Sequence record: NC_074653.1
DNA: 18,212 nucleotides
Strand: one strand, 5' to 3'
Shown: positions 1 to 18,212 of the stretch, in pieces
Layout: every line of letters starts with the position of its first letter
Position numbering within the stretch: position 1 is the first letter of the stretch
Notes under the pieces: model-generated
What the model was told of the DNA's origin: nothing
The model's input: only the letters and a program-made list of their open reading frames with translations
Database searches by the model: none
Made by a program: the position numbers and the translations under genes

Positions 1-55
1 CCCCCTCGCGCGCACACAAAGCCCCCACGCCGGCCTCTCAAACACGGCGGGGCCC
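1..55 (+). repeat. Left inverted terminal repeat (55 bp)
   Basis: Exact reverse complement of 18158-18212. The match breaks at base 56 (A vs G). Confidence 0.99.
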
Positions 56-142
56 ATTCTCGCGGAGTTATAAAGGGCGGCCGTGTCCATTGTATCGCTT
101 ATCAACTACTAGGGCGCCGAGGTATCTCCCTTTACATATAGA

Positions 143-159
143 GGGGGGGAGGGAGGGGG
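143..159 (+). other. G-quadruplex-forming motif G7-A-G3-A-G5
   Basis: Can be parsed as GGG-G-GGG-A-GGG-A-GGG, four G3 tracts with 1-nt loops. Confidence 0.55.
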
Positions 160-328
160 ATACTAACTACTTACACGCAGCCTCTTTACAATTAGTACGG
201 CGAAAAATCTAAATAGTTTAACTCACGGCGAACCCGGGATAATATATAATATACCTGGAATGACACATGTAAAGCGTGAAAAGCGCGCTTATCCCGCTTT
301 ACAAAGGTCTAGCCATTTCAACTATCCC

Positions 329-376
329 CTTTAAGTTTAGCAAGATGCGCTTTATAAGTGTCCACTTTTTCCCCAC
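329..376 (+). repeat. Degenerate inner inverted repeat, left copy
   Basis: 39/48 ungapped identity to the reverse complement of 18090-18137. The first 15 bp (CTTTAAGTTTAGCAA) are exact. Confidence 0.9.
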
Positions 377-441
377 CAACGTCAAGTTTTTCCCCGACAA
401 CGTCCACTTTTTCCCCAACAACGTCAAGTTTTTCCCCCAAC
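360..441 (+). repeat. Four tandem ~21-bp iteron-like repeats (ABAB pattern)
   Basis: GTCCACTTTTTCCCCACCAAC (360), GTCAAGTTTTTCCCCGACAAC (381), GTCCACTTTTTCCCCAACAAC (402), GTCAAGTTTTTCCCCCAAC (423). Confidence 0.95.
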
Positions 442-486
442 TTAGTTTCCGCTTTTCGCGCCGTGGGGTGTTTATTCCTACTAAAA

Positions 487-494
487 TATAAATA
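487..494 (+). promoter_or_regulatory. TATA box of the helicase gene
   Basis: TATAAATA starts 28 nt before ATG 515. Confidence 0.65.
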
Positions 495-514
495 TAAGCT
501 TTTGCTGGGTTTTT

Positions 515-2092
515 ATGGGTTCTAAAAAAAGAAGAGAAGCGGCCGAAACCGAGGCCCTCACGGAGGCCACCCAACTCCCCGTAAATGACTCATTTCTCTC
601 TTCATTGCCAAGCTCAGTCTGGTTGTTAAAGAATTGCCGACTGGGATATAAAAGTATTGAGTGTCCATATGACATTAAGATCCATGTTAGGTGGTTTGAG
701 GACTACGTGGCTGTTAGCATAAACGGCGAAAAAGTCAAGCTGACTTATGAGGACTTCTATTCCATTGTCACGGGCGCTGAATATACAGTTAAACAACTCA
801 ATTGGGCCCACAAACTTGAGGTGGGAGATGAAGTGGTGACAGCCACCCCATGCTGGGATAGGAGTGGAAACCGCTTTTTTGTTATTAGGTATAACAATGA
901 CACTACAGACAGAAAGCCGATAATTACAAAGGGCGATACCATATTTATGCCAGGGTTCAACGCTAGCTTATGTCCACAGTATCGATATATCCGTGACGCC
1001 ACGGAGGAGGAGTTCAAAAAAGTCAACGCGGACCTCCTAAAGAATATGTCCCACCTCCCCAGCGATATCAGACACGCAATATACTATGCAATTATCTATG
1101 GTTTCGCGGTCCCACTGTCAGAACAAAGGCCCATTTTGGGATTATGGGGCCCTCCTGGAATAGGAAAGACCACGATACTGAAACTAGTGGCGGCTTTCCA
1201 TAACGCCTACATTGTTGAGGGGTACAGCCCAGCTAGCATAAGAAACCTACTGACATGGCAAAATGTTATTGCTGATGACGTATTAGAGTCCACTAGCGCT
1301 GAAAATATCCCTCAATTAACTGACTTGATACTGGCATATTTTAATAGACACGTGACCGCCAGAGTCTACACGACAAGTGCGTTTAGGAGGTTCTACACCC
1401 GCGGATCCCTATGGATGGCTGGGGCTAATCTCTTAGAAATTATCAACTATCGTGAGGGAATACCTAGGAGGTTACGGTTATATGGTTTGTTTAAGAAAGT
1501 CACTCCTGCAGACATTAACCATATATACAAAGATATAGAGTACTACATGGCGTTAAGCTACATAGTAGTGCCTAAGAAAATAATTGCTTTAGACGTGATA
1601 CTTGGGGACGTCTCAACGCCTACATCTCTATTGCTAGATACCGCTATGAGTATAGTGGGAATGTATGCCGATGCAGAACAGAAATTTGAGGAGACCTATG
1701 AGACGCCGCATGTGGAGTCCCATATTGTTTCGCTATTGCAGAGAACAATAAAGCAATTGAGAAAAGCGAAAGCCGCCCCAAAATACGCCAAGCCGCCCTA
1801 TCTCATAGTATTCTCTAAAGCCAGTAACATTCCCAAGCGCATTAGCACTAAGGCTATCATAAACGAGGACACTAAGGTGGTAGACGGTAAGCTAGTCAAT
1901 GTCCACAAGGTTTCTAGGGAGGCCCAAACATATACCACCGAAGAGCTTGTGAAGATATTCCGCTCTTTAGGTCTCCCGCTAGAAATCAAAGATAAGGCGG
2001 TTGTCGTGGAGGACACTAAGCTTGAGGAGGCTTTGCAGATAGCGTGTATGCGCTTACAAGACATGGGAGAGACGTCACCATATTGCCAATAG
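515..2092 (+). CDS. AAA+ ATPase, D5/P4-like superfamily 3 helicase (525 aa)
   Basis: Walker A GPPGIGKT (aa 212-219) preceded by SEQRPILGLW, Walker B VIADD, motif-C/sensor-1 SLWMAGAN, Arg finger GIPRRLRL. Confidence 0.85.
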   Translation: MGSKKRREAAETEALTEATQLPVNDSFLSSLPSSVWLLKNCRLGYKSIECPYDIKIHVRWFEDYVAVSINGEKVKLTYEDFYSIVTGAEYTVKQLNWAHKLEVGDEVVTATPCWDRSGNRFFVIRYNNDTTDRKPIITKGDTIFMPGFNASLCPQYRYIRDATEEEFKKVNADLLKNMSHLPSDIRHAIYYAIIYGFAVPLSEQRPILGLWGPPGIGKTTILKLVAAFHNAYIVEGYSPASIRNLLTWQNVIADDVLESTSAENIPQLTDLILAYFNRHVTARVYTTSAFRRFYTRGSLWMAGANLLEIINYREGIPRRLRLYGLFKKVTPADINHIYKDIEYYMALSYIVVPKKIIALDVILGDVSTPTSLLLDTAMSIVGMYADAEQKFEETYETPHVESHIVSLLQRTIKQLRKAKAAPKYAKPPYLIVFSKASNIPKRISTKAIINEDTKVVDGKLVNVHKVSREAQTYTTEELVKIFRSLGLPLEIKDKAVVVEDTKLEEALQIACMRLQDMGETSPYCQ

Positions 2093-18039: not shown

Positions 18040-18062
18040 GCGTTCTAAATAACGCTTTTTTT
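18040..18062 (+). terminator. Hairpin plus T7 terminator after the last gene
   Basis: GCGTT-CTAAAT-AACGC followed by TTTTTTT. Confidence 0.6.
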
Positions 18063-18089
18063 CTTCTCTCGGCGTTTATTGTAGCTGTC

Positions 18090-18137
18090 GTGGGGGAAAG
18101 GCGGATATTTGTAAAACACATTTTGCTAAACTTAAAG
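18090..18137 (-). repeat. Degenerate inner inverted repeat, right copy
   Basis: Reverse complement is 39/48 identical to 329-376 and ends in one iteron-like unit. Confidence 0.9.
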
Positions 18138-18157
18138 CGCGGTGTTTATTATATCAC

Positions 18158-18212
18158 GGGCCCCGCCGTGTTTGAGAGGCCGGCGTGGGGGCTTTGTGTG
18201 CGCGCGAGGGGG
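18158..18212 (-). repeat. Right inverted terminal repeat (55 bp)
   Basis: Exact reverse complement of 1-55. Confidence 0.99.

Follow-up and report, generated by a model that had tools for sequence, protein, structure and literature searches.

Linear dsDNA genomes with hairpin ends, such as those of poxviruses, ASFV and archaeal rudiviruses, have variable sub-terminal regions and shifting boundaries of their terminal inverted repeats (TIRs). In the SaPI pri-rep-ori module, an iteron origin lies beside the primase-helicase/Rep gene, and the core origins of polyomaviruses and papillomaviruses combine inverted short boxes, a palindrome and an AT tract, which are bound by an SF3 helicase. For the globuloviruses, the ICTV profile records nothing known about genome replication and replication proteins identifiable in none of the members, and it describes the termini of PSV as apparently covalently closed. 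The window analysed here (the whole stretch of DNA, 18,212 nucleotides) is identical over its full length to MN876845/NC_074653, the complete 18,212-bp genome of Pyrobaculum spherical virus 2 (PSV2). PSV2 is a linear dsDNA virus of the family Globuloviridae, and its host is the hyperthermophilic archaeon Pyrobaculum arsenaticum. Its published description gives perfect 55-bp TIRs and 32 ORFs that all lie on one strand, with ORF2 as an AAA+ ATPase.

A first-pass annotation, made from the letters of the window, had drawn attention to a further inverted repeat offset from the TIRs, and had proposed that its two copies are paired, asymmetric origins or loading sites. The second inverted repeat is real, significant and previously unreported: the published description of PSV2 mentions only the 55-bp TIR, with no second inverted repeat and no tandem repeats, so the annotation was right to call the repeat unremarked. 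The features to which the text refers are as follows.

1–55, plus strand: left TIR, perfect over 55 bp (inverted-repeat scan, published)
95–514, plus strand: conserved left non-coding control region, a candidate origin or regulatory region (alignment with four relatives)
128–136, plus strand: box 1, CCCTTTACA, family C-S/T-C-TTTA-N-A (pattern match, conserved in the left-arm alignment)
182–190, plus strand: box 2, CTCTTTACA (pattern match, left-arm alignment)
268–303, no strand: 36-bp palindrome with two inverted CGCTTTACA boxes (268–276 minus, 295–303 plus)
327–335, plus strand: box 5, CCCTTTAAG (within the left-copy alignment)
329–376, plus strand: left copy of the 48-bp repeat (box 5, box 6 and the first 21-bp unit)
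348–356, plus strand: box 6, CGCTTTATA (within the left-copy alignment)
360–443, plus strand: 21-bp tandem repeats, four units, a duplicated 42-bp unit (self-repeat scan, TRF, relatives)
484–498, plus strand: TATA-like box of ORF02, about 25 nt upstream of the ATG at 515 (promoter pattern, conserved in relatives)
515–2092, plus strand: ORF02, a P-loop/AAA+ protein with a predicted helicase-like fold (sequence searches, AlphaFold model)
18040–18062, plus strand: terminator-like hairpin and T7 run after ORF32 (GCGTT-CTAAAT-AACGC-TTTTTTT), kept in the related right ends L168 and L161
18070–18083, plus strand: direct repeat DR1, CGGCGTTTATTGTA, which flanks the insert and is a single copy in L168
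18084–18139, minus strand: 56-bp insert made up of GCTGTC, the right copy (18090–18137) and CG, inverted with respect to the left copy
18140–18153, plus strand: direct repeat DR2, CGGTGTTTATTATA (self-repeat scan, comparison with L168)
18158–18212, minus strand: right TIR (inverted-repeat scan)

Alignment confirmed that 329–376 pairs without gaps with the reverse complement of 18090–18137 at 39 of 48 positions. The first 15 bp (CTTTAAGTTTAGCAA) are exact, and the nine mismatches (344, 348, 350, 355, 358, 360, 364, 366 and 370) are transitions without exception. Worked out by hand, six of the nine would be G-T pairs in a plus-strand panhandle; as 4.5 are expected, the wobble count is not significant, and either strand gives as many by chance. 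We set the panhandle argument aside, as neither the transition-only pattern nor the G-T count requires a panhandle. Measured from the inner edge of the perfect 55-bp TIR, the left copy is offset by 273 bp (56–328) and the right copy by 20 bp (18138–18157). With arms that are offset unequally and not collinear from the genome termini, and with unrelated intervening sequences, the repeat is not a simple extension of the TIR; nor does it share the homogenised state of the ends, as the 48-bp arms are 81% identical versus 100% for the TIR. The left copy ends in the first unit of the 21-bp array, in which four units were counted, and the right copy in a single degenerate unit (ATCCGCCTTTCCCCCAC, 13/17 identical to the first left unit), as originally described.

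In a check of uniqueness, the 48-bp pair was the strongest non-TIR inverted repeat in the genome. Its ungapped score (+1/−1) is 30, compared with 16.5 on average (sd 1.0) and 19 at most in 30 dinucleotide-preserving shuffles, where each further score unit is about 3-fold rarer, and these shuffles exclude a chance origin. An assembly artefact was also considered as the source of the right copy and judged unlikely, because a read is longer than the 56-bp insert, nine positions distinguish the insert from the left copy, and right-arm-specific sequence surrounds it. An independent assembly of the PSV2 right end was not found, ORF31 and ORF32 being matched exactly in the GenBank record only; L175 (SRR12124856) holds just the left part of PSV2 and begins inside the repeats. 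As a query against IMG/VR, the exact 15-mer was uninformative (>116 unrelated matches). Folded as single strands, the 48-mers and the right spacer do no better than shuffles, and there is therefore no local hairpin signal in either.

Relatives were retrieved for comparison of the two ends. A search with ORF02 gave close relatives with 79–90% amino-acid identity in the ATPase, five of them newly retrieved, and a search with ORF32 gave relatives at 63–79%. SRR23175669_17380 (18,353 bp) supplied a left end (L158) and a right end (L161), as did JAWAKX010000004.1 (18,599 bp; L159 left, L162 right, with L160 a fragment). Scaffold_1441 of ERZ23499125 (18,497 bp) was used as a whole contig (L171), its right part also as L166, and L167 is a near-identical fragment. 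A further left end came from SRR33701729_1480 (L174), and further right ends from SRR21520496_94577 (L168), JAVYKK010000113.1 (L169) and SRR21619488 (L170). These right ends were taken from metagenome and Logan contigs, which break off within the TIR or close to it; contig P0010 extends just 18 bp beyond the stop codon. Searching IMG/VR with VP2 gave no match as a single sequence and TTSV1 itself only as an alignment, and the 36 globulovirus-like metagenome loci found with VP2 showed no nucleotide similarity to the PSV2 ends, being too distant or truncated. A 22-base pattern conserved in the left arm was absent from GTDB genomes and IMG/VR. Public metagenomes and SRA assemblies hold at least five PSV2-like lineages. 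Among these, JAWAKX010000004.1 is an 18.6-kb contig in a MAG (GCA_038887235.1) whose proteins NCBI labels 'Nitrososphaerota archaeon'; it is a near-complete PSV2-like globulovirus genome with 97-bp TIRs and looks like a virus mis-binned as cellular.

The right copy stands within sequence that bears the marks of an insertion, namely direct repeats on either side and, in a relative, the site without the insert. DR1 and DR2 are identical at 12 of 14 positions; we calculate a probability of about 0.02 that a 12/14 direct repeat arises by chance somewhere in the 123-bp spacer. From the stop codon of ORF32 through the terminator to CTCGGCGTTTATTATATC, L168 is nearly identical to PSV2; beyond CTCGGCGTTTATTATATC it runs directly into TIR-proximal sequence, with a single 14-mer and no insert, so that the PSV2 right spacer is 70 bp longer than that of the related virus at this site. 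The right copy was likewise absent from L161, L162, L171/L166/L167, L168 and L169/L170 when the related right ends were searched with blastn-short, and a scan of the last 300 nt of L161, L162, L171, L167, L168, L169 and L170 for the box family found no box. In L171, a whole scaffold of 18,497 bp, the TIR (at least 72 bp, 97% identical) is not accompanied by a second inverted repeat. The left member of the pair is thus present in 4/4 related left arms (at the same position in L158, L159/L160, L171 and L174) and the right member in none of the right ends examined, which is not the distribution of a conserved paired cis-element. The right spacers of the relatives are of at least three unrelated types, and those other than L168 cannot be aligned at the insert site. 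The insert does not resemble a MITE or IS, as it lacks inverted ends and its only other copy is the left-arm locus; with no inverted ends and no dispersed copies, it is therefore a one-off duplication and not a member of a mobile-element family. From the sequence comparison we infer an insertion in PSV2 rather than a deletion in the L168 lineage. Had DR1 and DR2 instead recombined in the L168 lineage, one chimeric-looking 14-mer would likewise have been left behind; whichever direction the event took, the right copy is dispensable in the PSV2 clade.

The substitutions indicate where the right copy came from. Over its 48 columns it differs at 9 positions from the PSV2 left copy, at 13 from L158/L159/L171 and at 22 from L174, and it shares A342, A345, A375, C376 and the TCCCC core with PSV2 left against the relatives; these shared PSV2-specific bases mean that it derives from a PSV2-type left arm. 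Four changes are private to the right copy: T348, T350 and C370 replace bases shared by all five left arms, and G364 replaces one shared by 4/5. Two of these, T348 and T350, make TGT out of the conserved CGC in box 6. On the left, the single private change is T355, which creates a TATA-like TTTATAA. This asymmetry of private changes fits relaxed constraint on the right copy, which has presumably lost its function. Positions 344, 358, 360 and 366 are polymorphic among the left arms, with the right copy in the L171/L159-type state; as these are states of other lineages, either the copy came from a PSV2-type left arm older than, or different from, the present one, or transitions recurred (homoplasy). 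The 19% divergence between left and right copies is close to the third-codon divergence from the nearest relatives (15–23%), and the event is therefore not recent.

The distribution of mismatches is less simple. The exact 15-bp block is the best-conserved stretch of the left orthologues, and the probability that all nine mismatches fall outside it is about 0.02 (our own calculation). Transitions make up 0.49–0.67 of the non-coding differences between PSV2 and its relatives, 0.68–0.71 of those at third codon positions and about 0.6–0.75 of those among the left 48-mer orthologues; given a background of 0.5–0.7, nine of nine has a probability of about 0.01–0.04, for a pattern that was noticed post hoc. 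The all-transition divergence is mildly unusual, and beyond mutation bias we leave it without explanation. Together with the 15-bp block, it could reflect some constraint still acting on the right copy. The genome has just three occurrences of the 8-mer CCCCCACG (22–29, 18089–18096 and 18184–18191), one per TIR and one at the inner end of the right copy, where it is made by the right-private T370C; its presence there may be coincidence.

The left copy belongs to a larger conserved region. Positions 56–514 are effectively non-coding, and PSV2 can be aligned with the four related left arms along the whole stretch between about 95 and 514, at a mean column identity of 77% (divergence between PSV2 and relatives is 9–17% in non-coding sequence and 15–23% at third codon positions). 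This region of about 420 bp lies directly upstream of ORF02 and contains six boxes, a 36-bp palindrome and phased 21-bp repeats. The boxes, of the family C-(C/G/T)-C-TTTA-N-A, start at 128, 182, 268 (minus), 295, 327 and 348, with one more at 69 (minus), and five of the seven genome-wide matches to the strict pattern lie within 69–357. All six boxes are retained in the related left arms, as are the palindrome, the AT tract, the G-tract, a block at 439–470 and the ORF02 TATA. The most striking conserved element of the left arm is the palindrome at 268–303, whose arms are complementary at 16 of 18 positions in PSV2 (2 mismatches) and perfectly so in L159/L160/L171, and the outermost 9 bp of either arm do not vary among the five genomes; its DNA fold has z = −3.55. 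The AT-rich tract at 239–253 reads ATAATATATAATATA. GC content is 0.34–0.36 at 176–250 and 0.28 at 476–525 (the ORF02 promoter), and neither stretch immediately adjoins the repeats. The G-tract GGGGGGGAGGGAGGGGG (143–159) is the sole G-quadruplex pattern match in the PSV2 genome and is mostly kept in the relatives (GGGGG.GAGGGAGGGGG); G-rich tracts also occur near the left ends of TTSV1 and TSPV1.

The tandem array has the helix-phased direct repeats of iterons, with a 21-bp period and 3.4–4 units, compared with one degenerate unit in the right copy. TRF reports 3.4 copies at 366–437 with 86% matches, and in the self-repeat scan the in-register units start at 360, 381 and 402, with a further partial unit recognised by eye at 423. 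The relatives have three units. Within PSV2 the repeat core TTTTTCCCC is homogeneous, with a TCCCC-type core, and more generally the core is uniform within a genome and differs between genomes (TCCCC in PSV2, TACCC in L159, TACAC in L171, TACGA in L174). Such a pattern is typical of concerted repeat evolution, for example with a cognate binding protein or by unequal exchange. The annotated ORF01 (276–491, PSV2_gp01) overlaps this region. Neither its GTG276 start nor the internal ATG345 is conserved, a 1-nt indel shifts the frame in relatives, and its seeming 7-aa repeat is the 21-bp DNA repeat in translation. Neither ORF01 nor a 70-aa minus-strand ORF at the right end has a homologue in any globulovirus contig, and ORF01 is probably not a gene. 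From its composition and conservation, the left region is most plausibly an origin and/or a regulatory region of ORF02, and a credible candidate for either. Cumulative GC skew of PSV2 rises monotonically from left to right, with no inflection or mid-genome switch, which is consistent with one-directional coding and/or replication; because all PSV2 genes are on one strand, it is weak as origin evidence.

ORF02 starts 72 bp after the array, and its TATA-like box matches the promoter pattern that precedes about 15 other genes of PSV2. Its homologues are PSV ORF582, TTSV1 ORF1 and TSPV1 GP1, the family-wide globulovirus 'AAA+ ATPase', and the protein family is tiny (8 representative clusters). Sequence searches gave only a Walker-A/P-loop signal, below Pfam thresholds, and detected no primase domain. 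An AlphaFold model from a 13-sequence alignment (mean pLDDT 72, pTM 0.61) starts with a beta-rich domain at the N terminus, followed by a P-loop core, a helical region and an alpha/beta domain at the C terminus. Its best matches in the PDB are the SaPI5 primase-helicase (7ola), the ASFV PrimPol helicase, MCM, SCCmec Cch and the C-terminal helicase of NrS-1 (E-values 2e-6 to 1e-5, with low global TM-scores of 0.26–0.34), and the unfoldases p97 and AFG2 score just slightly worse. Among predicted viral structures beyond its own family, almost all matches are primase-helicases, DUF927 or NrS-1-like proteins (E-values to 6.5e-12). On the predicted fold, it is reasonable to regard ORF02 as a putative replicative helicase (D5/SF3-like, NrS-1-like, MCM/Cch), which strengthens the adjoining conserved array as a candidate origin or control region of the helicase gene.

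In the ends of PSV, TTSV1 and TSPV1, where the first-pass annotation had suggested looking for equivalent offset repeats, a search found no second offset inverted repeat. Individual elements are shared more widely. The pattern C[CGT]CTTTACA occurs 4–6 times per genome in PSV2, PSV, TTSV1 and the PSV2-clade relatives, versus 0.2–0.7 expected, and as a single copy in TSPV1. In PSV, one box lies in each TIR, one upstream of the ATPase gene and one in a right-arm intergenic gap. The 190-bp TIR of PSV, like the PSV2 left arm, holds such a box (CGCCCTTTACAAA), also found upstream of the PSV ATPase gene and at 26694–26706. This 13-mer (86–98 in the TIR) is inverted at 26694–26706, in the right-arm intergenic gap, and the similarity does not extend beyond it. 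PSV also has 22-bp tandem units at 28–114 in the TIR, whose consensus (ACCAACGCAAAAACACCCCCAC) resembles the CCCCAC-CAACG portion of the PSV2 21-bp units, and a second array of 22/11-bp units (TTTCCATAC) at 1167–1235, upstream of the ATPase gene. These PSV elements lie inside a perfect TIR and are symmetric for that reason, whereas those of PSV2 lie outside the 55-bp TIR and on the left only, save for the inserted right copy. A further motif, TTTCAACT, is found at 316–323 in PSV2, 18–25 in TSPV1 and 76–83 in L171 (at the TIR boundary), and in PSV as three tandem-spaced copies (1005, 1024 and 1044) upstream of the ATPase gene. Boxes and tandem units therefore belong to a cis vocabulary that these globuloviruses have in common.

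The ends themselves change quickly. TIR length is 55 bp in PSV2, 97 bp in JAWAKX010000004 and at least 72 bp in ERZ23499125, with 2 mismatches that are both transitions. The first ~20 nt of the JAWAKX TIR are similar to PSV2, and its internal sequence is different. The contig ends of SRR23175669 share a 30-nt inverted overlap that corresponds to PSV2 left 93–122, and its TIR therefore reaches further inward than that of PSV2 (roughly 120 or more bp). Such variation is sharp (55, at least 72, 97 and about 120 or more bp) for viruses that are 85–90% identical elsewhere, and the inner boundaries coincide with CGGCG/CACGGCG-type motifs. As both TIR length and inner boundary vary, the ends are recombinationally dynamic. 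The capture of a small stretch of left-arm sequence, inverted, in the right spacer is in keeping with such shifting termini.

Considering these comparisons, the right copy is probably a lineage-specific duplicative insertion from the left control region that has begun to decay, and not half of a paired-origin system. A piece of that region (two boxes and the first 21-bp unit) would have been copied, inverted, into the right sub-terminal spacer of the PSV2 lineage, in a one-off duplicative insertion or by capture in break repair or end-to-end recombination, and the 56-bp copy would have come to lie between two 14-bp sequences. The left copy would be the conserved and presumably functional one, with the right copy drifting. 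A functional pair of asymmetric origins or helicase-loading sites near each end, kept by selection, is unlikely. Such a pair would account for a highly non-random repeat whose exact 15-bp block coincides with the stretch best conserved among the left orthologues, for two copies that each end in a repeat unit, and for the T370C change that gives the right copy the 8-mer of the TIR; the replicative-helicase-like predicted fold of ORF02 beside the left copy and the blank on replication in the ICTV profile leave room for it. However, related right ends lack the right copy (with an empty site in L168), PSV, TTSV1 and TSPV1 have no equivalent, the right copy carries private changes in the CGC of box 6 and a single degenerate repeat unit, and the monotonic GC skew speaks weakly against the pair, as all genes are on one strand. 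Of the original proposal, the part that places an origin or loading site in the left arm stays plausible, because this is a conserved non-coding region with phased repeats and an adjoining helicase-like gene. The two-ended cis-system is not supported, because the right copy is missing in relatives and the pairing, specific to one lineage, looks like a drifting duplicative insertion. It is quite improbable that the left region is a PSV2-like globulovirus origin recognised by an SF3/MCM-like ORF02 helicase with the right copy as a still-active second loading or synapsis site; if so, PSV2 alone would have a two-ended initiation or end-pairing mode.

The right copy could instead be the neutral remnant of a longer TIR (at least 376 bp) whose collinearity was broken by an indel of about 253 bp while the outer 55 bp stayed homogenised. 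The bracketing 14-bp direct repeat and the empty site in L168 fit an insertion and not a deletion between TIR and copy, no TIR of a relative reaches the equivalent of 329–376, and the similarity ends abruptly on both sides, with left 56–328 wholly missing on the right. We therefore consider a remnant improbable, for all that TIR length varies among the relatives (from 55 through at least 72 and 97 to about 120 or more bp), that PSV has 22-bp repeats with a similar CCCCAC...ACG motif inside its 190-bp TIR, and that the level of divergence fits old, unconstrained sequence. Inward-facing promoters or starts of small ORFs, with TTTATAAG at 351–358 as the TATA, are very unlikely. An ATG does stand in the same alignment column of both copies (345 left, 18121 on the minus strand right), PSV2 promoters have TTTATAA/TTTAAAA-type boxes about 25–32 nt upstream of starts, of which the left copy has one, and the annotated ORF01 spans the left copy. 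But TTTATAAG is found in PSV2 left only, the box being TTTACAA(G/A) in all four relatives and in the PSV2 right copy, so that the 48-bp copies have neither a conserved octamer nor the A-rich BRE of real PSV2 promoters. Nor does the coding side hold: the relatives keep neither ATG345 nor GTG276, the frame of ORF01 is interrupted by a 1-nt indel, ORF01 and the right 70-aa ORF lack a homologue in any globulovirus contig, and by hand count eight of the nine substitutions would be non-synonymous in the shared frame. An Rfam search of the whole PSV2 genome matched no family.

Paired origins would have been a first handle on globulovirus replication, and the comparison indicates that the pairing is an accident of one lineage. 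Of more interest than the repeat itself are three by-products of the analysis: the relatives, the architecture of the left arm and the fold of ORF02. The structured non-coding region at the left end is a concrete candidate for an origin or regulatory region, the predicted fold gives a structural indication that the family-wide globulovirus ATPase beside it may be a replicative helicase, and at least five uncultivated PSV2-like genomes allow, for the first time, a comparison of genome ends within this family and reveal rapid turnover of TIR boundaries. Combined, these three make binding and initiation-mapping experiments well targeted.

Overall, the lineage-specific insertion reads as another instance of sub-terminal turnover in a linear viral genome, and its novelty is modest. 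Like poxviruses, ASFV and rudiviruses, PSV2 has linear dsDNA with TIRs, with TIR length and inner boundary varying in its group and short repeats and duplications beside the TIR. Unlike in these systems, a copy of part of the unique left arm lies inverted in the unique right spacer, 20 bp inside the TIR and not collinear with the ends, and the PSV2 genome has no identified resolvase or Rep nickase. The resemblance to the SaPI module is that the ORF02 model best matches the SaPI5 primase-helicase and other D5/SF3-like helicases, and that its gene adjoins phased repeats with an AT-rich tract nearby; in contrast, ORF02 has no detected primase domain, the repeats are upstream of the gene and sub-terminal in a linear genome, and the global TM-score is 0.26–0.34. 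With polyomavirus and papillomavirus origins, PSV2 shares inverted 9-bp boxes in a palindrome (268–303), an AT tract (239–253) and an adjoining candidate SF3-like helicase, although there is no sequence relationship, the PSV2 genome is linear and its origin role is putative.
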